From NCBI RefSeq assembly GCF_052425735.1, contig NC_135760.1:14012001-14076000 (forward strand): 64,000 nt of DNA. The letters run 5' to 3'. Origin of the DNA: Oculina patagonica (Eukaryota). This document shows, one piece after another, positions 13,138-57,900 of this stretch. Position numbers and translations under genes: made by a program. How positions within the stretch are numbered: position 1 is the first letter of the stretch; each line of letters opens with the position of its first letter. The notes beneath the pieces were generated by a model. It was not told the DNA's origin, searched no databases, and was given only the letters and a program-made list of their open reading frames with translations.

Positions 13138-16100
13138 TAATTATTATATTATTATTATTATTACTAAAATTACGAGCAGTTCGTGCGTTATCCGACCTAC
13201 GTGTCACATTAATTATATTTTGTGTAATACCTGCTTTCGCCATTGATGTACAATTGAAAACGTGTGTTGTAGGATATAAGAATCTCATTAGCCTGGCTTG
13301 ATACGGCATAACTGAAGAGACTCCCTTGACTGTTGGTAGAACTCATCCACAGACAAACCGTGAACGCAGTCAAACTACGCTTTCCCGGTAGCTTAACATA
13401 GTTATTGACTCCTTTGTTTGGAAAATTGAAAGCGTAGTCTGAAATGACAAAACAAATACAGATCAGCAAGAGAGTAACTCTTGAGATCAGTTAATACCTT
13501 TTTGGAACAACATATCAAAGTACAGGGAGAAGCACTAGAGGACGATTGGATAGCTTGTTCTTCCTATGCAAATTCCGCTTCCACTTTCAAACGGCCATAC
13601 AAATATCTAGTTTTATAAACGCTCTTTCTATTCTTAACGACTTTTCTTTCGCGTAAGTGACTTGCTTTTATGACACTTCTGAGAAGTTGGTCACGCGTTC
13701 AAGTGTTTCATTGTTGAGAGAGACACTATTCAGAAGAAGAAACAGGTGTTTCGAAAAAGATTGCCAAAAAAAATCACAAAAGTGCAAAAGTGGTAGATCA
13801 AGATCAGCCTTAAATTCCTTTCGAGGGCTAAGCGTACCCCACTTTTCCTGTACTAAAAGCTAGAAGTGCAATAACAATATTATGCACTTAATGTATATAA
13901 TTTGTACTTTTTTGGCAATTTAGTAACCTGAAGCTTAGAAACATACGTGTATAATAAACTGTTCTGTTGAACCTGTATATAAAAATTATAACAGAGTCAC
14001 CCACTCATTATCTGATACGGCTCACAGGGAGATGGCTTGACTAGCTTTGCGCCCCCCTGACGAAGGAAATCGGTCCAATTGTAAACAGTAGCTTGATTCC
14101 ACTCATCCACGTCACATGATACTGAGATTTCTGTTATTTGTGCAACAGAAAGCACGCTATTCCATACGTTGACATTTGATAACATTCCTTGAAAGGAATC
14201 ATCGGTCTGAAAGCCACCACCGACTGAGTCTTGGTCTTGTCCTAACACCAGGGTACCGCCTTGTCTTATTGAGTAATCTCTCTTGAAGTTTGTGCCTTGG
14301 TCGTTCAGGATGCAATCTTTGTAGAATTTCCATGCTCCTGAACTGTTTTCCCAGGTTACACAGATGTGGTGCCACACATCGTCGTTAGCTGTCACTGAGG
14401 TAGCTCTTTAAAAAAAGAAATCGCACACAAATCATCAGGCTGTCGATTGCCGGCAGCAGTTTATAATTTTAAGATGACCTCGGAAGATTAAGGTTGCTAT
14501 GACAACCAGAGCCGTAACCAGACTTTTGGCATAGACGAGGCAAGATCTTGCTTGGAGGTTCTGGGGGTATTCCCTCCACAAACTTTGTAGAGCAAGAAGC
14601 TGTGAAACACTTTCTTTACCATTTTTAATAAGGTATTTCTTGAAAAAAATCAAGTGTTTTGAACTGGGAGTTATTATTTTTCCAACTAAATATATTTTGT
14701 TTTTAATTGTCGGTTAAAATCAAGACGAGGCAAGTGCCTCGTCTTGCCTCTTGCTAGTTAGGGCCCTGACAATATCTCAGGGTCAATAATAAACATCAAC
14801 ACTTTCAACATCAAGTTTGAAACTAAGGCATGCTTGCCGTACAGTAATAGGAATGGCGGTTACGTTTTCGAATTGGTAGCGCAAAATAATCTAACGGTAC
14901 TTTAATCTGCCACAATGAACAAAACTTGTTATTACAATTAACGTTACATGAGTTACCTGACAATGCTTTCTATAAGCAGCAACCTTATACATCTGTTGTG
15001 CTCGTTTTTACTAATGAAGCACACAGAGAGAGTTGCAGTGCCATTACTTCAGTGTTACTTAACATTACTTACAATACAGTTTCATTACTGAAATATAAAT
15101 ATATGAAAACATATATTTGAACTGCGGATGAAGAATAAATGAAGAGAAGATCGTCGCCAGGATCTTCTCTTCATTTAGTTTCATTACTATTTATATTACT
15201 AATGACGGATTCACTTACAATGGCACAACTACTTAGACATCACACCTAGCGAATTGCCAACCATAGCCCCAATTAAGAGTAGCCTGTCCAAAGCCGAATT
15301 TTAATTGGCAGTTTAAATGTAGTAAGCAAAGCGCTGAAAAGAATTCACTTCACTCGTGTAAAAATGCGGTTACTCCATGCGTTATCTCCGTTACTTCCTT
15401 ATATGTACATGTAATACCTGCTTTCGCCGCCGATTTTTATCTGAAAATATCTGTTGTAGGATATGAGAAGCTCATCAGCCTGGCTTGATACAGCATAACT
15501 GACAAGACTCCCTTGACTATCAGTAGAACTCATCCACAGACACACCGTGAACGCAGTCAAACTGCGCATGCCTGAGACTTTTACAACTTCAGAGACACCT
15601 TTTTGTGGAAAATTGAAAGCGTAGTCTGGCGAAGGAGAAAAAAAAAAGCTTCAGTATAAAGAGATCTAGTCACATCGATGAATACGTTAATAATAAGAAG
15701 AATTCGAACTTTTTAGATTTATAAATACTTAATTACTTTTGTTTCCTATTAACAAATAATTTAAATATAAACTTAAAACTAATTAATTTATTCTTTTCTG
15801 TAATTAATTAAACATTGTTACATACTACGAAAGTAAAGTACGAACAATCTCGTCCTCGAGTGAATGATGGTTGTACTGTTTACCCAATAATAGAACTGTA
15901 GCTGGACTCAAGGAGATATAAAATATTGAGTTTTCATTCTTGAGAAAGTGATGAACTGAAGCAAGACTCGCAGTTTCTTTTGGTTCCAGCACTTTGCTGT
16001 GTTACTGTTGTTGTTTTTTGTTGCTGTTGCATAGGGCTCCAATTTTTTAGAGCACTGATCTTTTCATAACAGCTGGCACACACAGAGGACCAATGAAGTT

Positions 16101-19100
16101 TGAAGCTTGAGAGAGAACTTTTACACTGATAAATTTTGAATTGTTCAAATGGTGCTAATTAATTAAAAAAATTAATTCTGATTTGAAAGCGTTCCTCTTG
16201 GCAGTTTTTTTTTATTTATCCTTCAATAATATAGTAATGTTTCCTAACTTCCTCATTCCGGACGACGCGGCGCAGGGTTGAGGGCAATGTCATCATTATC
16301 GTCGTGGTCGTAGTTGTAATAGTGGTACTTATGGTTATTATATTATTATCATAAAAAAGTTCTTTATTACCAGCAAATGGCGCGAGAATTTTATTTTAAA
16401 GAATGGCATGTTTGATGATTTTTGCAATATGTACATGTAGATGAATTTAAACTCATACCCTTTCCAAATGGTTCACACGAAGATGGTTCAATGAGCCTTG
16501 CTTCTCCCTCGCGAAGGAAATCGACCCATTTGTATACGTTTCCATAATCTACTCCATTTAGCAGACATGATCCTGACATCTCCTTGATTTTTGCAGCGTT
16601 TAGCACTCGATCCCATACGTTGACATTTGATATCTGTCCTTGATAGGATTGAGCGGCCTGGTAGCCACCGCCGACCGAGTGTTGCCTTTGTCCCAGGACT
16701 AAAGTGCCACCTGCTCTAATCGTGTGACCTGTCTTAAAATTCGTGCCTTCATTAGTTGCTTCACCATCCTTATAGAATTTCCAAGATCCCGAACTCCTTT
16801 CCCACGATAAACAGATCTGGTGCCATTCGCTGTCATTGGCTACAACTAAAGTTGTCCTTTAAGCAAAAAAAAAATTATCTAGCATCCGACTCTGGTATTT
16901 TGCGTTACTTCGGTGGCGAGAGCAGCTCAATGTAAGGGTTTCAAGGCTGAAACAGACAAATTTCAGTACGATTTCTGCAGTTCAGAAATACCACTTGCGA
17001 AACAATGTTGTACTTATTACTGCTTTAGGCACGGTACAAATCACGTTTTGTCCCCCTGCAGCCGTCGCCCCCTTCTTCCCCCATTTAAAAGAATAAAAAG
17101 CTCAAAAGACCCCGTCGTATTTTAGACGCAAACATTCATATGACAGGAAGCATAAATACCTTCAAATACATCGATTAAATGTTTAAATGCTTTTGTTTTC
17201 CTAAAGAAATTTTAAACAATTTTTGCTCTCAAGAGGTTGCACGTCGGCTGAATTACGAACACGCGCACATTAACTAACAAAGAAATATATTTTTAAAAAT
17301 TTGTTTACTTAATATTGTACTTTACTGCCAGTTTGTCCACGTCTTATTTGAAGAAAAAGAAAGAAAACAAAACGCCTGATCGCAGGTTAGTCTATGCATT
17401 ATCTCTGTTATTTACTTATCACTTTATATATATGCACTTAATACCTGCTTTCGCCATCGATGCTCAATTGAAAATATGTGTTGTAGTATATGAGAATCTC
17501 ATTAGCCTGGCTTGGTACAGCATAACTGAAGAGACTCCCTTGACTGTTAGAAGAATTCATCCACAGACACACTGTGAACGCTGTCAAACTGCGCATGCCC
17601 GAGAGGTCGACCACGTCATTGACTCCTTTGTTTGGAAAATACAGGGCGTTGTCTGACGAAGAAAAAAAAACTTCCGTCTTAAAGAGATTTTTTGTCACAT
17701 GGATTTATATTTTGGCAAAAGTGTAGATATTTTTTCGGTATACTATAAATTCTGTTTGGATTAGTTTACATACTAAACACTGTCTAAACTACGCCTAACA
17801 CCGAAAATGCTTTTTAAGTTACGTTGGATTGCGCTTTAGTTGCTTAAAAAAAAGTCTGCGTTGGAGACTGGTGGCCCATCAGGCCGGAGCTTATCCTGGT
17901 TTCAGTAGCACGAAGCGACCAGAAGAATTTTTTATCCTCTCTGGATGGGATGCTAGTCAATCGCAGGGTTACCCTAAGTAATCATTTTGCCTGAGCGAAG
18001 AGTGGCACTGTTAGAGTAAAGTGTCTTGCCCAAGAGCACAACGCTTTGAACTCAGCCAGGGGCCAAACCTTGACTGCTTATTCTGGAGTCCAGCGCACTG
18101 GGCCACCAGGCCTCCTAGACTGTGCTCTATTTGATTAAAACCGCACATAATAATAATATTTGTCATTGTATTACTTTTTAAATAAATTCCGACTTAATCT
18201 TAACTCAAAAGTAAAATAATAATTATATGACTGTTACAGATTATTATGGCGAATCAATAAATTCGGGAATTTGATTGGCTTAAATCGATATCGGCTGCGA
18301 TTAAAAGAGCTGAATTCAATTTTCTTGAGTACGTACTGAACTAAGTGCGAAATAACATGAAAAATATACAGGCGCTTGTGCTGAGGAAGTCAAATTGATA
18401 CTGATCATGTTGTTATATTTAGTGATACTAGTGATACTAAGAATATATAATTTACGCCTGTATTATATACCTTATTCAGCATAAAAAATGTATTTAAAAG
18501 CTTTTACTAACCAATCAACACCGGCTGACAGGGAGATGGATGGACAATTGTTACTCCAGGACCTCCTTGACGAAGAAAATCGAGCCATTTGTATACTTTG
18601 CTATTAGTAGCTTCATCTTGTAGACAGGTTTTTGAGAGCCTACTGATCTGTGTAGCATCTAAAGCGACATGCCATACATTAACATTTGATAACATTCCTT
18701 GAAAGGACTCGACCGCCTCAAAGCCACCACCGACGGAATCTTGATCCTGCCCAAGAACCAGTGTGCCACCTTGTCTTATCGTGTGACTTCTCTTGAAGGT
18801 TGACCCTTGTACTTTCAGGTCACCATCTTTATAAAATTTCCAAGATCCTGAATTGCTTTCCCACGATACACAAATTTGGTGCCATAAGCCGTTGAAGGCG
18901 CGAACTGATATATCCCTGTGGATCATAAATGAACGTAAAACGAAGTAAATCGTATACACGTTCTAATAAATTACAACTGACCTTACTAAACTACATAGTA
19001 CAGTGGAACCCCGATATAACGATCTTCGATATAACGATATTCTCGATATAACGATGAATATGTTATGTCCCGGCAATAGTAAAATGTATGGGACGGAACG

Positions 19101-22100
19101 ATTCCTCGATATAACGATATAATTTTACTGCCCCCTTGGCATATCGTTATATCGGGGTTCCACTGTATTTGTTTTATCCGTTTTAAACGGGGTAATATGA
19201 TACTGGTTGTTTTTGTGATAAAATTTGAGAAAAACGGCATCAATATACGAAACTACCTTAGAACATAGTTAATAGAGGGAAATGGTTAGGAAGCCCGGCA
19301 AACATCAAAGGAGCAAACAATGAGGCCAAGACTTAGGTTGGAAGGTCCATGACCGTGCACATCTTTTGTTTTGCTCTCATACACTATGCATGAGTTACGT
19401 AATCCAAATGTTTTTATTGGTTTGTTGCTTGAACACACGTAACCACCTATTGTATTTTGTCAGGTTTTGTGCAGGGTCAACCCCCAAAATAGCGAACAAT
19501 AACCTATAACAAAGAACTTTGACCGGCTTCCTAACCATTTTCCTCTATTAACTATGCTTAGAACCGCCACAAAGTAGACATTTAGTTGTCGACAACTATC
19601 TGATATCGATAACTAAATGTAATTGACAGCTTAACCTAGTAGTGTGTAATACGATTTGTCATCACCTAAATTGCTAATGTTTTAATAGTCGACAACTAAA
19701 CTGTTTTACTTTTCGAAAATGGAAACTGCTTTATAGTTGTTATTATATGAATCATTGGTTTAGTTATCAGTAGTCAGTGGTTGCGCATGCGTAGTGAACG
19801 TTAGTTCCCAAAGCTCTTGCGGTATAAACAGTTATAGTGAGCGTTGCTTTTCAAGCTTTTTTTTCTGGCTTAAGTTAGTTATGACAACTAACACTCCATG
19901 TGGAATCCTCGCATCGAACAGAATTAGTTCTAGAAAAACATTTAGTTGTCGATAACAAGTAGATTTCGACAACTTACACAGAGCGGTTTTCACTTGAGTG
20001 TCGAAAGTAATTCGCGTTTGCATTGGTTTTGCATTACTACGCTCAGTGATTGGTTTAAAACTCTCGCGCCACTTTCTCAGCCAATCAGAAATAGAACCAA
20101 AACCAATCGTGACTCGCTTGCACACGTTTTCCAGCGCTTCGTGCCGGCTACATGTATTTGCCTTGAGTTTTGATTGGTTTACTGGATTGTCTGTGTTCTT
20201 TGTGATTGGCTCGAGTGATTTCTTTGGTTTTGGTTTTACGACACTCAATTGAAAAATGATCGATCATGTTACTTATAATTTACGTCTAATACCTTTTTTC
20301 GCCACCAATGTACAACTCAAAATTATTGTTATAGGATATGAGCAGCTCATTACTCTGTCCTGATACAGCGTAACTGACAAGACTTCCTCGAGTGTTACTT
20401 GAACTCATCCAGAGACACACGGTAAAGGCGGTTAAACTGCGCGGCATGTTGGTGATTTTGACAAGGTTAAGAATCTCTTTGTTTGGGAAATCGAAAGCAT
20501 TGTCTGAAAAGTTAAGAAAACAGCACGTATATTAGTTTAAGGAATTTTTGCAGTATGTATGTGATGACTCTAATTTCATGGACCATGACATATTCTGTAA
20601 GCATAATACTTTAATGTGACACCTGCCGTCCCCCTTACCTCGCCTTCTGAAGCACATCTTTTTCATTCTTTTAGCGATCTGGTTTGGAGTCCTGACCATG
20701 ACCCTGACCTTTTCATGCTTCTTGGGAAAGACACTTGACTCTTACAGTGCTTCTCGCAATCCAGGTGTAGAAATGAGTACTATGGTATTTAATGTTAGGG
20801 GTGGGGGGGGGGGGGGGGGTTACGTCCCATTCTAGAAGGGGAGGAGGGATAGTAAAAAAACATAACCACTTCATGCTAGTGAAATGGGATAGCCCCGGCT
20901 CACAGGCCACTAAGCTTGAACGCAGTCTCAATCTACTTACTCAAAAACGTCCTCACAGTACACTGGTCTTCAAACAGAAATAGGCAGCGAATATGTTTCA
21001 ATTTAATGCAGACTAAAAGGTTTATACCAACTGCCGAGCAAACAGTCCTCTTTTGACAGCTTATTTCTAAACGGGCTCTTTTATTGGTTATAAACGCCTC
21101 AGGATATAAGTACCCTTAGATTAAAGCGTTCAAAAATCTTCTTGCGAAGTAGTAAAACTAATATTCAGATAATTTACAGTGCGGCTACTGTAACCGGGGT
21201 CACCCAGACAAAGTTAACCAATCACAAAGCAGAACTGAAACAAAAGATTTCTACATTTTTAGCTTCAGCCAATGAAATGTCGAGTACAGAACAAAGAAAT
21301 TTCAACTTCTTCGTTCGCCACGAAACCAGATCGATACAAACTTTAAATTGGCCGTATGGCGGCGCTGAATTTTCAATTAATTTCAATTGCATCCGTTTTG
21401 AACTTGAGTGGTTGTGACAGCAACATTTGGAAGGTAAATATTAGCGATGTTTACTGATTTGAGCTTGCAAATGTTTATTTTGTTGAAGGAGGAAAACCTG
21501 AGAACCCTCGAAGTAAGAACGAGAACAAACAGAAACTGGAGACGTGCGCTCTCACCCCCTGCTCCCTCATCCCTGCATCCCCATTCGCCACCTCAACACC
21601 CCTAAAACCCATATCAAAATTTTGTACTTAGCCCCAGCAGATTTGAATAAAAATTAAACCTGGTTAACGTGTTATGTAACCTACCAGCGAGCAGCGGTTC
21701 ACAGGTAGATGTTGCTAAGAGTCTTGTTTCGGATGCTTGGAGGAAATCGCGCCACTTGTATACATTTCCAGCATTCCACGGATCCAGCAGACATGACGTT
21801 GCCATCTCTTCGATTTGTGAAGCAGGTAGCACTTTATTCCATAAGTTGACATTTGATAACATTCCTTTGAATGATTTATCAGCCTGAAAGCCACCACCGA
21901 CAGAGCCCTGCTTTTGTCCTAGCACCAGCGTGCCACCTTGCCTTATCGTGAAGCCTCTCTTGAAGTTAGTGCCTTCCTTTTTTATCGCGCCATCTTTGTA
22001 GAATTTCCATGAACCCGAACTGCTTTCCCACGATACACAGATATGGTGCCACACACCGTCATTGGGGGATACTGAAATGTCCCTAGAAAAAAAAAGTTAA

Positions 22101-25100
22101 GATGGTTTCCACCGAACATTCGAGCAATACAGGCAAAAATAAAGTTACCAAAGAGATCTCATAGCATGGTAACAGTTTGAGCACAGCTAACAAAAACCTA
22201 CCAACACTTTAGCTCTCAAGCTGACCCCTCCAGAGGAAAATGGATTTGAAATTATCTACATTTCAATGAAAACGGACGTTTCGCGCCAGTTTAAAACAAA
22301 AAGGCGCGCGTTTTAAACATTTTTACAAGGTTTGACTTAAATTTTCTCGAGAACGCTTTAGAGTTTTATCACGGGGTCACTAAGACAAATTAATTTTAGT
22401 GAGATGTTTCAAATAGTATATAAAATGTAACCAAACTATAAGTAGATTTTTGGTGCTTAATTTTTACACTCATTGCTCGAACTTTCAGCGGAATCCATCT
22501 TAAATGTTCTATGTTTGTGTTGTTCGTGTTTTGTTGGATTTAGTCAGGGAATACGCCACTCGGTTAAGATGGAGTGGCGCATGAAATCTACGAGTGGTTA
22601 AGTTTCCAGAAAAACATTCTCCTTTACATATTTATTATTTATATTGACATTTAATACCTTTTTTCGCCACCTATGTAAAACTCAAAATTATTGTTGTAGG
22701 ATATGAGAAGCTCATTAGCCTGACTTGATACAGCATAACTGAAAGGACTTCCTTGACTGTCACCCGAAATCATCCACAGACACACCGTGAAAGCCGTCAA
22801 ACTACTACGCATGTTCGTTATTCTGACAGAGTCATCCACGCCTTTGTTTGGAAAAAGTAAAGCTTTTCCTAAAGTGACAAGAAGAAAGCAAGAAATGCAT
22901 CAGTTACAACTTTCCAGCGTGTTTTGAACCTCGTATAATTATATAATGTACGCTCAATTTTCCGAACTCTCACATTATTATAAAGTAAAACATTAACAAA
23001 GATGATAGCACACCTGGGCATGTATCTGCTGCGATAATAGACGCACTTTGACGAGTTTCAATCGTATCATCTGACAAGTGAAACACAGAACCGGTATGTA
23101 ATCCAATGCAGTCCTTTCGTATTACATCAAAATCTGTTCTCTTTTCACTCCATATGTTTACATGAGAAATTTCTCCCACGAATGCTTTTGCCGCGACAAA
23201 CTGTTTCTGGGGTTGCTGTCGTTGTCCAAGTACAAGGTATCCACCCCCTGCCAGTGCTGATCGAGTGTAAGTCAAAGGACCAATAGTACGTGTCCCTTCA
23301 CGAATGGTCAAGTGACCATTAGATGATTGCCATTCGATCCACAAGAAATGCCAGTTTCCGTCGTTTAAGTTCCAAGAACCTCCAGTGCCTTGTGAAGAAC
23401 CCTTAAGGATTACTCTCACTCTGGGGTGTGTCGTGATAACCAGTTCCTCTGCCTGACTTTGAGTTGCATAAGAAAGAGCTGTTCCTTCACTAGTCTGTTG
23501 CGTTTTCATCCAGAAAGAGATAGTCACTGCTGTCATCGCGGGAATGGCTGTCTCTACGGATACATTGGACGTTCTTCTAAGGAACAGCATGTAGTTGTGA
23601 ATTTCTAAATTGGAGAAAAAAAGAGCGTTACTTCACCACTCGAACAATGCTGAGCACAATGACTAATGTAATGCAAAGAACTTGTACTTTACGTTGTGAT
23701 GGAGCACCATGGGTAAGGAAATTTGGTAAACCCATGTTTTCAGTTTAAACTAGAAACTCATATGGTGCAGCAGCGCGAAAAACGTGCCAGTGAAATTTTC
23801 TCACGATCTTTGTACTCCACAAGGCCGGTTTTTGTGTTTTGCTGCAGCCGCAATGGCTGCAAGCAAAACACATTGAGAGCTGAAGTTTGTGCCGTAAGGT
23901 GTAAGTGCCGTAAGGTGTAAGTGCCGTAACAGAGGAGAAATCTGAACTACCGATGTCAATCAAATCCATGAACAAACAAAATCGAAACCAATGAACCGTA
24001 GCGCTGATCGCATTCGAAGTTACGGGCCAAAGTATTCGAACGCAAACCACGTTGGACACGTTGGAAAACAGAAAACCGATTTAAAAGTATATCGCATTGG
24101 GAAAGAAAACAAACTGTGGCGCGACCACTCCAGTTTTATGAGAAAATTATTCTGCAGTTTTCATCATTTACGAAAAGAGCGAAGACTTGGAACCTCGCCG
24201 AAGGTCATAAATATTTTCTCCAAAGGACCGGTTAGTGCACAGTTTGTAAACTTTCGCTTTGAAAATAAACTTACCCTCACCTTGTCTACACTGTCTACAG
24301 CATACTAGTACTGTATTAACTCTGAACTTCATATTTTAAAATAAAATGTATGAACGTGTAACTTGTCACGCAAAGACAGCTGGAAAGGAATATACCATGC
24401 TGGTAGGCTGCACCGCTAATTGTAGCTGTATTCGAGCTATATAAAAGACAGCTAGAAACGAATTAATACTAGTAACATCACAATGGGAAAGAAACTTATT
24501 CAGTGGTGCACACCGTCGAAAACAAAGAAATATTAAAGGAAGTTCTCATTCACCAGATTCACTGCATCAGATGCAACATTCGTCAGTTCGTGTAGTAGGG
24601 GTTAAATGCGTGGCGACCAGTTTGTTTACTAGTTATTAAAAAATAATACGGTCTTCATTTAATAAACAGTTCATCCTTAAATTTCAGCTTTTCTACGACT
24701 GACAGGTAGGTACTATAGTATAAGCGCCGCTAAAATAGCTGGAAAGGGAAAGTTTTTTGAAAAATGAATTTTTGACTGCCAGACGCGCTGGCGCCACATG
24801 TTTATTTTGTGAAGATTAATTAAACGCCGTGAAAAATAGAATTTGATGTCCAGCGAGCCACTGCATCTTCGGCTACGCAGTCCTCAGTGAATCCTCCAAC
24901 TTCACAAATTTCTAAAACTTTAAGAAAACGAACTTTCGCAGAATCAAAAATTGGTCCTTATCGATCTTCCGATCTTGTTGTGAAGACACTGAAATTCGAC
25001 GAGTGTTCATGCGTGAAGGGATGACTGACGAATGATAATAATTATTTGTAAACTTTCGCTTTCAAAATGAACTTTGCGTTACGTTCAACGCCGTCTTTCT

Positions 25101-36675: not shown

Positions 36676-36757
36676 TTAGTAACCAATGCAATGTTCAGCA
36701 AATCGCTTCACCATATGTGCACCCGCTATCAGTAGACATTAATAAATTCACGAAACT

Positions 36758-36888
36758 TGTGGAGTCCTGGGACTAGTAGAGTCGTCACGTGACAAGAAGG
36801 CCGTGTACGATCGAGTTAGTTGAGTTCTTGCCATGTGTGTGTTGTAACTCGGAGTTTACACACTGTTTTCTGTATTAAATACACCACA
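36758..36888 (+). repeat. 5' LTR of copy 2
   Basis: 131 bp TG...CA with ATTAAA at 36874-36879. Confidence 0.95.
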
Positions 36889-36960
36889 TTTTTGGCGACG
36901 AGGAACGTGATCGAATACCACGACCAGGTAGACTAGAGTGAAGCGAAGTCTACACGGAAA

Positions 36961-39900
36961 ATGCCTACATTTGGGAAATTAGACGAATACAACGAAACGG
37001 AAGATTGGCGCCATTACACTGAGCGTGTAAATCACTTTTTTGAAGCAAACGAGATAACCGATCCGGACAAAAAAAGATCCATTTTCCTGGTTAGCGTGGG
37101 AGCAAAAACCTACAAGCTTATACGAAGTCTGGTCGCTCCGGAGGACCCGAAGACCAAAACCTATGAGGATTTAGCGAAACTCGCCCAGGAACATTTCATG
37201 CCAAAGCCTTCCGCTATTGTACAACGATTCAAGTTTAACACTCGCACTCAACAACCAGGTGAGACAATTGCCATGTTTTTAGCTGAGTTGAGGCACCTGA
37301 CCGAACACTGTGAATTTGGGGCAACATTAGATGAAATGCTACGTGATCGGCTTGTGTGTGGTGTTCACGACATCAGAATACAGCGTCGTTTACTAGCCGA
37401 ACCGAAATTAACCCTGAAGCGAGCGCTCGATCTGGCTCTCGCCATTGAGGCCGCGGATAAGGATGCCTCGGAGATACAAAAGGGGGACCCTCAGGAAGGG
37501 GATACTTCGCTCAACAAAGTCGATTTTAAAGTGGAAAAGGGTGGCGAAGTTAATTGTTATCGCTGTGGCGGTAATCACTACCCCAAAAGCTGTCATTTTA
37601 AGGATGCGAAATGTTATGCTTGTGGAAAGTTGGGTCACCTATCTCGAGTGTGCCAGAACAAAAAGAAAGGGAAACTACCACCTCCTAGTACTAATAAGAA
37701 GTCAGACACCCCACAGGATACCCATCTCCTAGAGGGGGGAGAGGAGGCAATGGGGAGAGAACAGGGTGTGGGTGCATATTCTTTGTTTACCCTTGGCGGT
37801 AAACGACCTTTGCCATACAAAGTACAGCTGAGTGTTGGTGGGCAAGCACTAGAAATGGAAGTTGACACAGGGGCTTCATTGTCAGTGATAAGTGAAGGCA
37901 CCTACAAACACCTTGTCTCACAAAACGGGGCACCGCCACTGGAGAAATCAGGAATTGTCCTTCGTACATACACTGGGGAAGAGGTCAAGCCCGAAGGGGT
38001 GTGTACAGTTGATGTACATTATGAAGGGGGCGAATACTCCTTGCCATTGTTAGTTGTAAGTGGAGAAGGCCCAGCTCTGTTGGGGAGGAATTGGCTGGAA
38101 GAAATTAAGCTAAATTGGCCAAGGATTAAGCAACTTACTTCGCATGACAAGCGACTTGGAGAGATTTTGCAGAAACATGCACAGCTATTTGGGGAGGGTC
38201 TGGGGACCCTACAGGGGACAAAGGCCAAGATCCATGTGGACCCCACAGCCACCCCCATTTTCCATAAAGCCAGACCAGTGCCATATGCTCTCAGGGAGAA
38301 AATTGAGCAAGACCTGGAAAGACTTGAGAAGGCAGGAACCATTGAACCCGTTCAATATTCCGAGTGGGCCACACCCATTGTCCCAGTTATGAAAAGTGAT
38401 GGCACAGTAAGAGTCTGTGGAGATTACAAGCTTACCGTCAATAAGGTCTCGAAATTGGATGGCTACCCTATCCCCAAGCTCGATGATCTATACACAAAGT
38501 TGGCTGGGGGTCAAACGTTTACTGAGTTAGACTTGAGCCATGCTTATGAGCAGATGCTTGTGGATGAGAACTCAAGGGAGTTTTTGACAATTAACACCCA
38601 TAAAGGCCTTTTTAGATATAACCGCCTTCCGTATGGGGTCTCTTCAGCGCCCGGCATCTTCCAGAGAACCATGGAGGGTTTGCTGCAAGGAATACCTTCG
38701 ACAGGAGTCTTGCTAGATAATATCCTCATCACAGGGCCCAGCACGGAAGAGCACCTAGACAACATCGAGAAAGTTTTGGGACGCCTTTCTGATGCCGGCT
38801 TGCGGCTCAAAGCTGAAAAGTGCCAATTTATGAAGCCCGTTTTGGAGTGCCTGGGGCACCGCATTGACGCAGAAGGGTTCCATCCAGTTGAAGCAAAGGT
38901 GAAGGCCATCAAGGAGGCCCCAACCCCAACCAATCCCTCTGAGCTGAAGTCCTTTCTAGGGATGCTTAACTTCTATGGCAAGTTCATGCCCGACCTATCG
39001 TCCACCCTGGAGCCACTGCACGAGCTTCTGAGGAAAGATATCTGTTGGAAATGGGGTACAGAGCAACAAGAGGCGTTTGATAAGGCCAAGAATCGACTTC
39101 AATCATCAGATGTACTCGTACATTATGATCCTGAGAAAGAGTTGGTGGTATCTTGTGATGCTTCACCCTATGGTATTGGGGCAGTGCTGGCCCATGTTAT
39201 GAAAGATGGCTCAGAGAAACCAGTTGCATATGCCTCACGAACACTCTCCACAGCAGAGAGGAACTATGGCCACCTAGATAAAGAGGCACTAGCTGTAGTT
39301 TTTGCCGTGAAGAAGTTCCATCAATTTCTTTTTGGACGTCATTTCAAGGTCTACACAGATCACAAACCACTTTTGGGGCTGCTTAACCCTGAACGAGCCA
39401 CACCTCTAATGGCCTCAAGTAGGATGCAGCGATGGGCATTGACTTTGCTTGCGTATGAGTATGAGCTTATTTATCGCCCTGGTGAAGAGAATGGAAACGC
39501 AGACGCCCTCAGTCGTCTACCCCTTCCAGTTGCTCCAGAGACCACGCCCACCCCAGGGGACATTATACACCTTCTAGAGACCATCAACACCAGCCCAGTG
39601 GATGCCACTAAAGTGAAGTTGTGGACAGCCCGTGATCCAGTACTTTCTCAAGTTCTGCAGTTCGTCCTTCACGGATGGCCCATGGCAGTCGAAGAAGAAG
39701 CCCTGAAGCCTTATTTTGCTAGAAGAGAGGAATTGAGTGTACATGCTGGCTGCCTACTTTGGGGATCCCGGGTCGTGATACCCCCACAGGGGAGAGAGGA
39801 AGTGTTGAACATACTTCATGAGTCCCACCCCGGTATTGTTAGAATGAAAAGCCTAGCTAGGAGCTATGTGTGGTGGCCGAAAATGGACTCACGTTTGGAG

Positions 39901-40911
39901 GAAAAGGTGAAAAGCTGTGTTACCTGCCAAAGCCACCAAAAGAAGCCACCCAGTTCACCGTTGCACCCTTGGGAATGGCCAGGCCGCCCTTGGTCTCGAG
40001 TACATGTAGATTATGCCGGTCCTTTTATGGGCAAGATGTTTCTCCTAATTATTGATGCGCATTCTAAATGGATGGATATCCATTGTGTGAATTCTGCCAC
40101 TTCCAGCGCAACCATTGAAAAGCTGAGGACAACCTTCGCTTCACACGGCCTACCAGAGATTGTAGTGTCAGACAATGGGTCCAATTTTGTTAGCAGCGAG
40201 TTCAAGTCATTTCTACAGAAAAATGGCATCAAGCACATTACCTCTGCTCCTTATCACCCATCATCAAATGGCCTCGTAGAACGAGCGGTGCAGACGTTTA
40301 AGCAAGGGATGAAGAAGCAAGGTGATGGTACTGTCGAGACCAAGTTAGCTCGGTTCCTATTAAGTTATCGTATTACCCCCCAAAGCACCACGGGTGAGTC
40401 TCCTGCTCAGTTACGCTGGGGACGAAGTCTGAGGTCACATCTCGATCTGCTGCGACCAGATGTAGCGGCAAGGGTACATGCAGCACAGTCAAGACAGAAG
40501 ATACAGCATGATCAGCATAGCCGAATGCGTCAAGTGGAAGTCGGCGATTCAGTGAATGTTCGAAACTACTCCAGAGGCCCCAAGTGGATTCCAGGAACTA
40601 TCATCCAGGAAACTGGTCCTTTGTCTGCGAGAATTGAGTTGGAAGATGGAACTGTGGTTCGAAGACACCACGATCAACTAGTTGCTCGACCCACAGAAAG
40701 TTTCAACCCTGGTGTCACATTACCAATTACTAGCCCATTGCAGCAGGAAGGTGTGGATCCAGAGATAACCGTACCTGATGTAAATGACCCCGAGGTTGCC
40801 CATGGAGACAGAGAACCACCCAGTGCAACAATGGTTCGGGACTCGGGGCCAACTACCCCTGTCAGGCGATACCCAGCGAGGAATAGAAACCCCCCGCAGC
40901 GTTTTTACTAA
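36961..40911 (+). CDS. Single gag-pol polyprotein, 1316 aa (Gag with two zinc knuckles, protease, RT, RNase H, integrase)
   Basis: Knuckles CYRCGGNHYPKSC and CYACGKLGHLSRVC; protease VDTGAS; RT ELDLSHAY...RLPYGVSSAPGIFQ...LLDN; RNase H CDAS...KEALA...TDHKPL...ADALSR; integrase HESH...CVTC, VHVD...SDNG...GLVER. Order PR-RT-RH-IN is Ty3/Gypsy. Confidence 0.97.
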   Translation: MPTFGKLDEYNETEDWRHYTERVNHFFEANEITDPDKKRSIFLVSVGAKTYKLIRSLVAPEDPKTKTYEDLAKLAQEHFMPKPSAIVQRFKFNTRTQQPGETIAMFLAELRHLTEHCEFGATLDEMLRDRLVCGVHDIRIQRRLLAEPKLTLKRALDLALAIEAADKDASEIQKGDPQEGDTSLNKVDFKVEKGGEVNCYRCGGNHYPKSCHFKDAKCYACGKLGHLSRVCQNKKKGKLPPPSTNKKSDTPQDTHLLEGGEEAMGREQGVGAYSLFTLGGKRPLPYKVQLSVGGQALEMEVDTGASLSVISEGTYKHLVSQNGAPPLEKSGIVLRTYTGEEVKPEGVCTVDVHYEGGEYSLPLLVVSGEGPALLGRNWLEEIKLNWPRIKQLTSHDKRLGEILQKHAQLFGEGLGTLQGTKAKIHVDPTATPIFHKARPVPYALREKIEQDLERLEKAGTIEPVQYSEWATPIVPVMKSDGTVRVCGDYKLTVNKVSKLDGYPIPKLDDLYTKLAGGQTFTELDLSHAYEQMLVDENSREFLTINTHKGLFRYNRLPYGVSSAPGIFQRTMEGLLQGIPSTGVLLDNILITGPSTEEHLDNIEKVLGRLSDAGLRLKAEKCQFMKPVLECLGHRIDAEGFHPVEAKVKAIKEAPTPTNPSELKSFLGMLNFYGKFMPDLSSTLEPLHELLRKDICWKWGTEQQEAFDKAKNRLQSSDVLVHYDPEKELVVSCDASPYGIGAVLAHVMKDGSEKPVAYASRTLSTAERNYGHLDKEALAVVFAVKKFHQFLFGRHFKVYTDHKPLLGLLNPERATPLMASSRMQRWALTLLAYEYELIYRPGEENGNADALSRLPLPVAPETTPTPGDIIHLLETINTSPVDATKVKLWTARDPVLSQVLQFVLHGWPMAVEEEALKPYFARREELSVHAGCLLWGSRVVIPPQGREEVLNILHESHPGIVRMKSLARSYVWWPKMDSRLEEKVKSCVTCQSHQKKPPSSPLHPWEWPGRPWSRVHVDYAGPFMGKMFLLIIDAHSKWMDIHCVNSATSSATIEKLRTTFASHGLPEIVVSDNGSNFVSSEFKSFLQKNGIKHITSAPYHPSSNGLVERAVQTFKQGMKKQGDGTVETKLARFLLSYRITPQSTTGESPAQLRWGRSLRSHLDLLRPDVAARVHAAQSRQKIQHDQHSRMRQVEVGDSVNVRNYSRGPKWIPGTIIQETGPLSARIELEDGTVVRRHHDQLVARPTESFNPGVTLPITSPLQQEGVDPEITVPDVNDPEVAHGDREPPSATMVRDSGPTTPVRRYPARNRNPPQRFY

Positions 40912-41031
40912 TGGACTCATTCCCTCCCCCGTGAACAGTTTTAAGTTTTAGGGCAGAGGCGTTAATTTTTTTTTTCTCGTTGACATTTGTTTTCTTGCTT
41001 GTTTAAGAACTTGGGGGGGGGGGGGGAGGAA

Positions 41032-41162
41032 TGTGGAGTCCTGGGACTAGTAGAGTCGTCACGTGACAAGAAGGCCGTGTACGATCGAGTTAGTTGAGTT
41101 CTTGCCATGTGTGTGTTGTAACTCGGAGTTTACACACTGTTTTCTGTATTAAATACACCACA
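41032..41162 (+). repeat. 3' LTR of copy 2
   Basis: Identical to the 5' LTR and preceded by the PPT. Confidence 0.95.
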
Positions 41163-41964
41163 AAACTACACCTTAAAAGAACTGCAGGGCATTTAGTCGA
41201 CAAAATCATGATCCAAACTGACCTGAAGCGTAAGACAATTGGGTCACATTGAATCACTCCTGGATAGTTATGAGCCAAAAATTAAGGTGCTGTTACTATG
41301 TTAAAAGGGTTACCCTCCTAGAAAGGCTAAAATATTCACATACGGGTGGAGTTACCCTTAAGCGGGGGTGGAAGTCATTCAAGGACAACCAACGGTGGAA
41401 AAACGTTTCCAAAAAATCATTTTTTGATCTTTGTTCGCGTTTTTCCTGTCGATCTCAAGCAAATTTCGCTCAGTTTCGAAAATTATAACCATTCGCCAAT
41501 AGTTTCCTTTTGGTGTTTGGTTGGTCTGGTTACAGGTCTAGTTAGGTGCGTGGGACGTCCCACATGCAGACAATGAAACAACCGGTAAAGCAATGCGAGG
41601 ACTATATGTCTTCGCCAGCCTATAAGTAAAAGTTGTTTTCTTATGTATTTTCATCAGTAACAGATTATTAAGAAAGCACGTTTAAGCCAATTACAAATTA
41701 ATCGTGTGCGTTCTGAAAGTTAAAAAGCAATTCAACCCATTAGCTTGTGAGATTACAGCATGTCCCATATAAATAGTTAATTTCCTCACTAATCACTATT
41801 GTAAATATTTGAGCTTCCTAAAATCGGCTTTTTACTGCTGTGTTTTTTAATGAAATTAAGTAGAAATATTTTTGCAATGTTAAAGTTTGTGTTTGATGCA
41901 GTTTTTTGGGCGATTAAAAGCACACGAGCACCGACTCGCGTATAGAATACATTCTGTCCTTTAA

Positions 41965-54900: not shown

Positions 54901-57900
54901 TACATCATGTTTCTGAAAGTTGACAGTATATATTATGCACCAGTGGTCAAAGGAAAAACCCTTAGCATTCTGATTAGATCGTCCATGTATATTACATAAT
55001 ACAGGGCTGCAAATAACAGTCGGTCATCGGACATTACTACTTACTTACTTATTCTCTTCGGGCCCATGAGGACTTTTGAGGCTGGTTTTGGTTTCCGTAA
55101 TCATATATTTTTACAGGGTGCGGGGATTAGCCGCACGCCCAACCCCAAACCTGGAGGACCAGTGACTACCATTTTGTCTGGCCTCTACCCTTTGACCTGC
55201 CCGCCAAGGTTAGACCTGCTGGGGGAAGACCCCCACCGGTATATCTCTCAGGGTCATTGAGGCACGCAAGCTCCCCCACCACAACAAGGCGGTAGTCTAC
55301 GGGCAAGGGTCATCGGACATTGGCCAACCAAAATTTGCTCATGTCCAAAAAAATCCCAAGTGTGATTGGACATGATGTCCGGACAAAATTTTTACATACA
55401 TGTATGTCCTTTCAAGTGAAAAAAATATTTGCAGCCCCGATATTATGAAATAAAAATTAAATGCAGGGGAAACTGTAGACTGTTCACAGTCCCCTATTTT
55501 TCCGTGACGTTGTAGAGATCGATCGTTCAGTCCGACAAGCCGCCATCTTGGTTTACGAACGCGAGCGAAAACTGGGGAGAGTGCAAAAACCCCGTGGGTG
55601 GCTGGGCTGGATGCAACCCGTCACACTCCCCCCCCCCCACCCACGAGTTTTTTTTGCACTCTCCCCATTTTTTGCTCGCGTTCGTAAACCAAGATGGCGG
55701 CCCGTCGGGCTGAACGATCCATTTCTACGACTTCACGGAAAAATAGGGGACTGTGAACAGTCTAGGGAAACTGAAGTTTCCAGTAAAACTTACCATCTAT
55801 CCACATTCTCTACACTTGTGTAGTGTGGGAGATACAGTTGAGAAATTTGAGCTAAACGGCTACAACATGGATTAGGAATGAATTATACCACAAATACTGA
55901 AACACTTGCATATGCGAGCTCACATCTCTTTGAGCCTTGTTCCAAACCCAATGGTACATCAGTACCAGTGACCCAGGACATTATTTACAGGCTAGAACTT
56001 GTATTACACTATGTATCTAACTGTTTTCAAGTTTCAAGTCTGAATATCAGGACAAATATCAGATAAATTATGGGACGCTACAAATTTATTCAGTGTTAGT
56101 GTGTGCCTGAGACCATGACCGCCTGTTTTGCAAGTGTCCAGTAAAAAAGGGTGGACTTGCAAGTTTGAGTGAACCAGTCACACATTGAAACCTTAAGGTG
56201 CAGCTAAAGAAAAGTGAAAAACTTTCAGTGGTTTCCAGCTTTGTCTAAATTGGCAAGATACTGCCCTTTCAGACAATGGCTTTACATGACTTGTTCATTC
56301 AGCTTGAATTAAAGCTACAATTTCTGCTGAACGACTGCAAACAAATTTTGAGTCTTCCAACAGTCTAACAATCTCAAATTTACCAAACCCCCAACGTAAA
56401 TTAGATGTAAACTTTTTGTATAATCTGTATGTGCAGTCAACAACAGTTGTTCAAAGGGTGGACAATGCTATCCACCAGACAAATCATTATCAAGTTGAAA
56501 AAAAAAACATGATTGATAGCATTACCCATCCTTTGAACAATGTCAGCCTGAACTGTTACTTCTCTTTGTATAGCATGGGTCTAATTTTCTTTTCTAGCCT
56601 GCCTCTTAACTTGTTGTGGCAAACAAGCCCTATATATTCCCATTTCACTCCATATTTGCTCCTTGCATGTGACTAAAAATGCTACCCGTAGGTTGTAAAG
56701 ACCTACCAGTGGCAGTTTTAAGGCAAGCGCAAGTTGCAGAAAAGTGAAAAAGGTGGATAGTTGTTGTAAATTATTGGTATTGTCACCATCTATCGTCATA
56801 TTATGACAGTTATCACATGCATTGAACATCTCCCACAGATCTATGCCCGAGATCCAGTGGCTATTAGTCACTTCCTGCAGACTGGATACAAACATAAAAC
56901 CTTTGCCAGAAACTAAGTGAGCCATACAGTGACTGCTTAAAGCCAAGGGACTGTACATGGTTGCCACAGACATCAGTTTTCAAAATTTACTGATTTTTCC
57001 CTGACTCTTCTCTGATAAAAATCAAATTTCTTTGACCAAAAATGCAAAATGTCAGATATAGTTGAAGCCTCCAGCATCCAAATCACAGAGATCACATTGA
57101 CATGAAATATTTCTTCCAACGTTTAATGGTATTACATCAGCAGCAGTATAGTTTCAATTTTCCCTCACTCAAAATACAATTCCATGACTTTTTCCTGACC
57201 TTAAAGAATTTTATATTTCCCTGACCATTTCCTGACCTGTGGCAACCCTGCTGTAGCATGAAAGAATCAAGGGTACTGATACTCTAGCCCCAGGATCAGC
57301 TGCTAGTCCACTGGAAGTTACTTCCTTTAACAGTACTTCCTTGGTGAATACAGAAGCCTCTATTTGCACATGCGAGGGCATGCAGCAGTGCACTGATATT
57401 ATTTTACAGTCTGTGGTATTTGTTTCCCTTTTTTAGCCAGGAGTGAATACCCTGTATTAAGCCAAATGGAATTGTCTCAATGTACTGTGATCATCAGACA
57501 AGTCAGTGAGAAGTTGACTGGATAATTTAGGCTCGACGTCTGTGGTGATGTACCAGCATTTATTAAGGAAGGGTTGGTATTTTTTCAAACCGCCACAATT
57601 TTTGATGGCATTCAAGGAAGCACAATATTCAAGGGTATTTAGTTCTTTACATAAGTGACCCATGGGAAGCAGTGCAGCCAATTCACACAACACACCTATT
57701 AACAAAATTTATAAATGCTTGTCACCTACATGTATGGGTATATGATCAATGCAAAATACAGTTACAGGGTTTTTTATTGAGGATTGAAGCAGGCGGGCAT
57801 CCGTTCAGGGTTTTGCACCCAGTCAAAGTATCAGCGAGGCCCTACCCTCTTCTGTAAACTGAAGTTGGTTCAGATGTTGAAAACAGCCAAGCAAAGTGGT

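Follow-up and report, generated by a model that had tools for sequence, protein, structure and literature searches.

A clade of anthozoan Ty3/gypsy retrotransposons with asparagine in place of the second aspartate of the reverse transcriptase YxDD box

The genome of the coral Oculina patagonica harbours a family of Ty3/gypsy-type long terminal repeat (LTR) retrotransposons in which the reverse transcriptase (RT) carries LLDN at the position of the YxDD box of motif C. Two copies of this family, a complete element (copy 2) and a closely related one (copy 1), are located in the stretch of 64,000 nucleotides analyzed here (contig NC_135760.1, positions 14,012,001 to 14,076,000, referred to as the window). 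The replacement of the second Asp of the box by Asn is shared by a clade of anthozoan elements and is accompanied by changes in motif A. Taken together, the data make it probable that this is an autonomous, recently mobile, K02A2.6-like family with an RT that would be active on two active-site Asp residues, in which the Asn has been fixed by selection and is permitted by the loss of a basic residue.

Both copies in the window read GVLLDNILITG (LLDN encoded by TTG CTA GAT AAT, in copy 1 on the reverse complement), as noted in the original prediction, which was made from the window sequence alone. The solved homologue with the best match was Ty3 RT (PDB 4OL8, E = 7.8e-66 over RT-RNase H), 7Q5B also ranking at the top with an E value of about 1e-65. 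In the alignment to 4OL8, LLDN is positioned on Y211-L212-D213-D214, with D524 of motif A on D151, D586 on D213 and N587 on D214. The motif is present in all 25 copies of the family in the genome (all with at least 93% amino acid identity) and throughout a clade in other anthozoans, which bears out the suggestion that it is not a single chance lesion.

Database views covered the best 120-150 matches per homologue search. Among the best 120 RT homologues, each of the 16 that reach 69.5% identity carries xxDN (13 LLDN, 2 FLDN and 1 LPDN), so that the motif is not confined to sibling copies, while all homologues with at most 65% identity have YLDD, YIDD, RVDD, RIDD or FLDD. The clade was enlarged to 19 proteins by a second search, and every one of these combines xxDN with E522, E530 and C630. 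They originate from Oculina patagonica (Scleractinia), Actinostola sp. (Actiniaria) and Paramuricea clavata (Octocorallia), the rest being from ENA, JGI and Logan assemblies. With the 16 diagnostic columns removed, the clade still formed one side of a branch (Shimodaira-Hasegawa-like approximate likelihood ratio test, SH-aLRT, 98, starred; 99, starred, on 384 sequences), with two deep subclades inside. Fourteen positions in the RT region set the clade apart, the most striking changes being K522E (two residues before the motif-A Asp), Q530E, Y584L/F, D587N and Y/F630C in motif E. Site 522 is Lys in 103 of 104 relatives and in 331 of 384 sequences of the wider set. Partial combinations of the diagnostic residues were found in none of the sequences compared. 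When 1.84 billion cluster representatives were searched with a profile of the clade, no match from the xLDN clade itself was obtained; at 50% clustering its proteins probably have been absorbed into YxDD clusters.

The first position of motif C was found to vary among the 384 relatives (Y 301, F 38, R 23, L 17), and LLDD is seen in a relative with 50% identity as well as in RTs further away. Asn at the last position is documented for nematode BEL/Pao elements (YVDN; PMC554778; PMC9094657). The statement in the original prediction that YxDD is near-invariant was therefore too strong.

Selection on the RT was analyzed by comparing the open reading frame (ORF) of copy 2 with four intact relatives for which DNA was fetched. 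Between the window copy and its nearest relative (dS = 1.04), dN/dS amounted to 0.033 for RT, 0.031 for the integrase (IN) core, 0.043 for RNase H, 0.071 for Gag and 0.33 for the C-terminal tail. The comparison of RT with IN, proposed as a check in the original prediction, thus gave no sign of relaxation in RT. The dN of RT was the lowest or near-lowest of the domains, also in deeper pairs in which synonymous sites were saturated. Synonymous codon turnover across lineages was observed at the clade-specific sites, with AAT and AAC for N587, TTG, CTA and CTT for L584, GAG and GAA for both E522 and E530, and TGC and TGT for C630. The RT:IN divergence ratio is 0.84 in the clade (interquartile range (IQR) 0.72-0.92) versus 0.78 in the YxDD relatives (IQR 0.72-0.84); RT thus has not come under weaker constraint in the clade. 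Residues with known roles in binding nucleotides or in catalysis do not vary among its members, namely Lys/Arg of the fingers, Tyr of the steric gate, Gln of motif B and Lys of motif D. Of the 384 sequences, all have the first motif-C Asp (D586) and 380 have the motif-A Asp. This conservation indicates that the LLDN RT very probably is a working enzyme without the "third" catalytic aspartate, and its chemistry or fidelity may be altered.

A DNA search of the genome retrieved 25 copies with at least 94% nucleotide identity, the next matches reaching only about 67%. Target-site duplications (TSDs) and LTRs were surveyed in the two window copies and 20 further copies; 18 copies had both LTRs within the examined stretch. 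Perfect 5-bp TSDs flank 16 of these 18, each TSD being different, and the copies are spread over many chromosome-scale contigs. The two LTRs were identical in 10 of 17 comparable pairs, and the four LTRs in the window, reported to be identical in the original prediction, indeed matched each other at 100% in a repeat search. The surveyed copies share 98.2-99.7% identity with copy 2, and a minority of them has kept the full-length ORF of 1316 amino acids. Copies 1 and 2 differ at 21 substituted positions and by three indels, and in copy 1 a single additional base near position 10005 breaks the polyprotein into two ORFs. They are separate insertions, because their homology ends at the LTR ends. 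Judged from the near-identical copies, the distinct TSDs and the open ORFs that some copies retain, the LLDN family is recently mobile and probably autonomous.

A second group with Asn at site 587 was found through the cluster representatives. One of these, P0277, is an intact polyprotein of 1358 amino acids with YFDN. Its relatives comprise 14 proteins with YFDN, including one of the sea slug Elysia chlorotica, and these 14 are interleaved with YFDD, YIDD and YLDD sisters. In the 384 RT sequences, N587 is paired with Glu (23), Thr (6) or Ser (3) at site 522 and in none of these 32 cases with Lys or Arg, while D587 is found with Lys or Arg at site 522 in 334 of 351 sequences. A careful tree of this region, for which the trait columns had been left out, needs four switches between Asp and Asn at 587 and four between basic and non-basic residues at 522, the two sites being concordant at every tip. 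Two DD lineages are nested among DN lineages in this tree, one with K522 and the other with R522. Sites 522 and 587 are the only positions that have left the YxDD state in both DN clades. The sequences thus indicate that the D-to-N replacement arose at least twice in Ty3/gypsy elements, besides its occurrence in nematode BEL/Pao, and that it is kept by strong selection.

A mechanism can be proposed that accounts for this coupling. Catalysis by the LLDN RT would depend on two aspartates only, D524 of motif A and D586, the first Asp of motif C. The residue in place of the second YxDD aspartate, N587, has become fixed under selection in this old lineage of anthozoan elements. In relatives with YxDD, the second Asp and the Lys or Arg two positions before the motif-A Asp most likely form an ion pair under the catalytic hairpin. 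In the sequences compared, the change from Asp to Asn always went together with loss of the basic residue at 522, which became Glu in the LLDN clade and Thr, Ser or Glu in the YFDN clade. It may be this loss of the basic partner that allows Asn to support a full retrotransposition cycle, which would account for the finding that Ty1 and Ty3 enzymes with the D-to-N change alone can polymerise in vitro but do not transpose. Catalytic activity, a physical contact between 522 and 587 and a compensatory role of 522 are what we infer here from sequence comparison. In the predicted structure residues 520-524 form a β-strand, and 581-584 and 587-590 form a hairpin with L585-D586 at the turn. In HIV-1 RT, Asp186 is the one catalytic-triad residue that lies no more than 10 Å from a bound non-nucleoside RT inhibitor (NNRTI), and the list of residues at this distance also includes Val108, Tyr183 and Trp229 (PMC6269006). 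Counted by motif rather than by structural alignment, Asp186, Val108, Tyr183 and Trp229 would be the counterparts of sites 587, 522, 584 and 630, in line with a concerted change of the layer that underlies the catalytic hairpin.

Several points weigh against the reading of an active, autonomous two-aspartate family with compensation at site 522. Ty3 has Thr at the position two residues before the motif-A Asp, yet its D214N mutation is lethal, so that losing the basic residue can be no more than a partial explanation. The covariation of 522 and 587 is complete but not statistically firm because the independent events are few; three pairs lie on starred branches, and the floor of a sign test is p = 0.25. 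The predicted structure, made from a 12-sequence alignment, is of moderate confidence only (mean predicted local distance difference test score, pLDDT, 64.5). The LTRs, with a length of 131 nt, give only a coarse dating of insertions. Near-identical elements turned up in separate sequencing runs labelled with several organisms, and one true metatranscriptome contains a 90-96% relative over most of the element; as contigs of RNA libraries could come from DNA, these data are no proof of transcription.

The RT could also be active with three acidic ligands, E522 and/or E530 replacing the motif-C Asp at the metal site. The fixation of both Glu residues in all 19 proteins of the xLDN clade, at sites where relatives have Lys (331 of 384) and mostly Gln, would fit this, as would the occurrence of both GAG and GAA codons at these sites and the presence of Glu at 522 in one YFDN subclade. 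The other YFDN lineages, with Thr or Ser at 522, Thr at 530 and intact ORFs of about 1330-1375 amino acids, speak against it, as they show that the DN state can do without a substitute carboxylate. Such a relocation is regarded as unlikely, and the same doubtful standing is given to its wider form, in which the third metal-binding carboxylate would have moved from motif C to motif A (K522E, Q530E) while the layer under the hairpin, the counterpart of the NNRTI pocket of HIV-1 RT, would have been remodelled by the Tyr-to-Leu and Tyr-to-Cys changes. If the carboxylate had been relocated, metal preference or fidelity could change.

The original prediction left two options, a natural RT with an altered active site or a family that supplies Gag and integrase and borrows RT in trans. 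Clade conservation, dN/dS, codon turnover and the invariant residues all fit the former. In the latter, LLDN would inactivate the polymerase; the family would provide Gag, protease and IN, and a YxDD family would lend the RT that copies it. Engineered Ty1 D211N and Ty3 D214N indeed abolish transposition in vivo (PMC2148107, PMC5371799), and Ty3/gypsy families of the YxDD and RxDD types are present in the same genome. A dead RT supplied in trans is nevertheless disfavoured and considered very unlikely, because RT is under strong purifying selection, with the lowest dN among the domains and a dN/dS of 0.033 at a dS of about 1, without relaxation relative to IN and with residues specific for catalysis kept invariant. 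The DN state has moreover lasted across Hexacorallia and Octocorallia and occurs in a second clade. In this genome no element was found in which the LTR and 5' untranslated region (5'UTR) of the family are joined to a different RT; they are always connected to the same internal sequence, with the exception of one locus (L053) described below, and the nearest other RT in the genome shares only 57-61% amino acid identity with that of the LLDN family. That the copies were spread by DNA-level duplication or an assembly artefact, which would make the motif uninformative on RT function, has a negligible probability: the two window copies are inverted and 24 kb apart, as a duplication could leave them, but the homology stops at the LTR ends, distinct 5-bp TSDs flank 16 of 18 copies on many contigs, and independent runs with several organism labels yielded near-identical elements. 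A segmental duplication of the two window copies was ruled out, as their flanks and TSDs differ.

Of the known systems, Ty3 RT is the closest. D151 and D213 of Ty3 RT are essential, while D214N and D214E mutants keep polymerase activity with lower processivity; all are lethal for transposition (PMC5371799). The coral RT is homologous to Ty3 RT over RT-RNase H, and D214N concerns the same site as the natural N587. Unlike the coral family, Ty3 has YLDD with Thr two residues before the motif-A Asp. Its D214N mutant has lost transposition, while the coral family, with Asn, has inserted recently and has been under selection for a long time. The Ty1 D211N enzyme, presented in the original prediction as retaining polymerisation and blocking transposition, is correctly described in this way; it is active with a kpol decreased 223-fold, prefers Mn2+, and is partly rescued by second-site suppressors (PMC2148107). 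Ty1 D211N likewise has Asn for the second Asp, and its suppressors are a precedent for compensation. It differs in being engineered, in belonging to another superfamily (Ty1/copia) and in having its suppressors in RNase H, while the coupled change in the coral family is found in motif A of RT. Natural Asn in this position is known from the YVDN elements of nematodes (Cer7-Cer12, Tas and Atlas virus; Belpaoviridae) (PMC554778; PMC9094657, preprint 10.1101/2021.11.23.469668), whose activity, according to PMC554778, 'remains to be determined'. These are likewise natural and apparently intact LTR retroelements with Asn for the second YxDD Asp, but they belong to another superfamily and to other hosts, and they keep the Tyr. 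The D-to-N replacement itself is thus already known in LTR retroelements. In the full-text literature search no description was found of an LLDN, FLDN, YLDN, YxDN or YFDN RT in Ty3/gypsy; likewise, no literature report was found of the occurrence of the replacement in Metaviridae, of its at least two independent origins there, of evidence for strong selection or of the coupled change in motif A. Among other palm-domain enzymes, viral RNA polymerases with an xDN motif C (GDN in Mononegavirales, ADN in birnaviruses) and telomerase with Leu for Tyr can serve as analogies only, these being other enzyme classes.

Copy 2 is placed in Ty3/gypsy (Metaviridae) by its LTRs, TSD, primer-binding site, polypurine tract, domain order and Ty3-type RT, and it nests among K02A2.6-like elements (Table 1). 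With the YLDD/YIDD members of this group from fish, molluscs, echinoderms and cnidarians it shares a single-ORF Gag-Pol organisation and about 57-65% RT identity. These relatives have K522, mostly Q530, Y-x-D-D and Y/F630, unlike the LLDN clade with E, E, [L/F]-L-D-N and C. The motif C of Ty3/gypsy elements is expected to read [Y/F]xDD and reads LLDN in every copy; the element is still filed in Ty3/gypsy, as a variant, because [Y/F]xDD is a sequence hallmark and not an architectural criterion. No Pao-type family was matched by the window element in Pfam and the nearest solved RT is that of Ty3, so that it falls outside BEL/Pao. The uninterrupted ORF of copy 2, already proposed in the original prediction, encodes a polyprotein with two CCHC knuckles, the protease DTG, every RT motif including the first catalytic Asp in motif A (TELDLSHAY), the RNase H D-E-D-D and the integrase HHCC and D,D,E residues; here too the earlier reading was accurate. 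In Pfam searches RVT_1, two RT-RNase H families, Integrase_H2C2 and rve were significant, while retropepsin-type families remained under the cut-offs. The domain order (residues) is protease 288-380, RVT_1 478-635, RNase H 698-832 and IN 940-1120, with integrase after RT.

Table 1 Features of the two LLDN elements in the window and members of a separate clade with Arg in motif C
Feature	Position	Strand	Remarks
Copy 2, complete Ty3/gypsy-type LTR retrotransposon	36758..41162 (4405 bp)	+	LTR pair, single Gag-Pol ORF, Pfam domains
TSD of copy 2	36753..36757 (5' side), partner 41163-41167	+	AAACT, 5-bp
5' LTR of copy 2	36758..36888	+	131 nt, TG...CA; same sequence as 3' LTR
Primer-binding site	36893..36904	+	TGGCGACGAGGA; 4 nt past 5' LTR; 12/12 complementary to CCA-tailed 3' end of host tRNA-Ser(GCT)
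Gag-PR-RT-RNaseH-IN polyprotein ORF	36961..40911	+	Uninterrupted, 1316 aa
RT motif A	38515..38556	+	TFTELDLSHAYEQM; catalytic D524; clade-specific E522 (relatives K) and E530 (relatives Q)
RT motif C	38704..38736	+	GVLLDNILITG; LLDN at 38710-38721, L584 L585 D586 N587
RT motif E	38842..38859	+	LECLGH; clade-specific C630 (relatives Y/F)
RNase H domain	39151..39516	+	D, E, D, D residues all present
Integrase	39817..40290	+	HHCC zinc finger and D,D,E core
Polypurine tract	41013..41031	+	G14 AGGAA; adjoins 3' LTR
3' LTR of copy 2	41032..41162	+	Repeat search, LTR comparison
Copy 1, same LLDN family	8411..12811	-	99.4% identity to copy 2; own TSD CTCTA
LLDN codons of copy 1	10847..10858	-	Reverse complement reads GVLLDNILITG
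LTRs of copy 1	8411-8541 and 12680-12811	-	Repeat search
RVDD/RIDD clade members			L027, L028 (own genome); P0023, P0026, P0047, P0063, P0076, P0085, P0107, P0110, P0119

The genome harbours 13 tRNA-Ser(GCT) genes ending in ...TCCTCGTCG, which were detected by a structured-pattern search; an exact 25-nt primer-tRNA query gave no match in the genome. A cluster of such genes, 82 nt in length and nearly identical, is located at G000:C4:60.97-61.54 Mb (L055-L058), and this tRNA is the likely primer of the LLDN family.

Some further observations concern the family and its surroundings. At the exceptional locus L053 (G000:C3:8558300-8564200), two family LTRs 5.1 kb apart enclose about 4.1 kb of unrelated, ORF-poor DNA without a long ORF, followed by only the terminal 858 bp of the element. 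The locus is not a YxDD partner and may be a derivative that was rearranged or is non-autonomous. Of L038 and L049, one copy lacks matching TSDs (CCCTG and CAAAA), and the pentamer in its 3' flank recurs as the TSD of a different copy of that contig, which could reflect chance or recombination between elements. Copy 1 is embedded in a tandem array (window 7497-22883) with units of about 2.1-3.2 kb (repeat families D1-D3), and the spacing across copy 1 is 6516 bp, corresponding to one unit plus the element. In a contig of an RNA library (run X16), window position 41091 is joined to 36818, connecting the 3' interior of a related element through a single LTR to its 5' interior; two elements in tandem, a circle with one LTR or a collapse in the assembly could each give such a contig. 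A separate, well-supported K02A2.6-like clade (96, starred) has RVDD or RIDD, with Arg for the motif-C Tyr, and is represented in this coral as well as in the molluscs Saccostrea and Mizuhopecten. The top-scoring cluster representatives (P0191-P0232 and others) are 2000-4400 amino acids long with 2-4 RT stretches, several including a distant LLDD RT, and most likely are gene models that fuse nested or adjacent elements. Elsewhere in the window (55476-55764), in the region assigned to DGCR8/GNB1L in the original prediction, an inverted repeat was found with arms of 114 nt (92% complementary) and a spacer of 61 nt.

A working RT is commonly recognised by its YxDD box, on which annotation pipelines and filters for "intact elements" often depend. 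Elements with xxDN should not be scored as dead. The loss of the neighbouring basic residue is a specific candidate for the compensating change behind the puzzle of the Ty1 and Ty3 D-to-N mutants, and natural DN and DD sister enzymes can be compared without engineering. If, in the less likely reading with a relocated carboxylate, the active site of these enzymes were rewired, they could differ in metal preference, processivity or fidelity, and the coupling of K/R522 with D587 would amount to a structural rule that holds generally in this group of RTs and had not been recognised before. Such a rule would explain the paradox between the in vitro and in vivo behaviour of the Ty1 and Ty3 D-to-N mutants.

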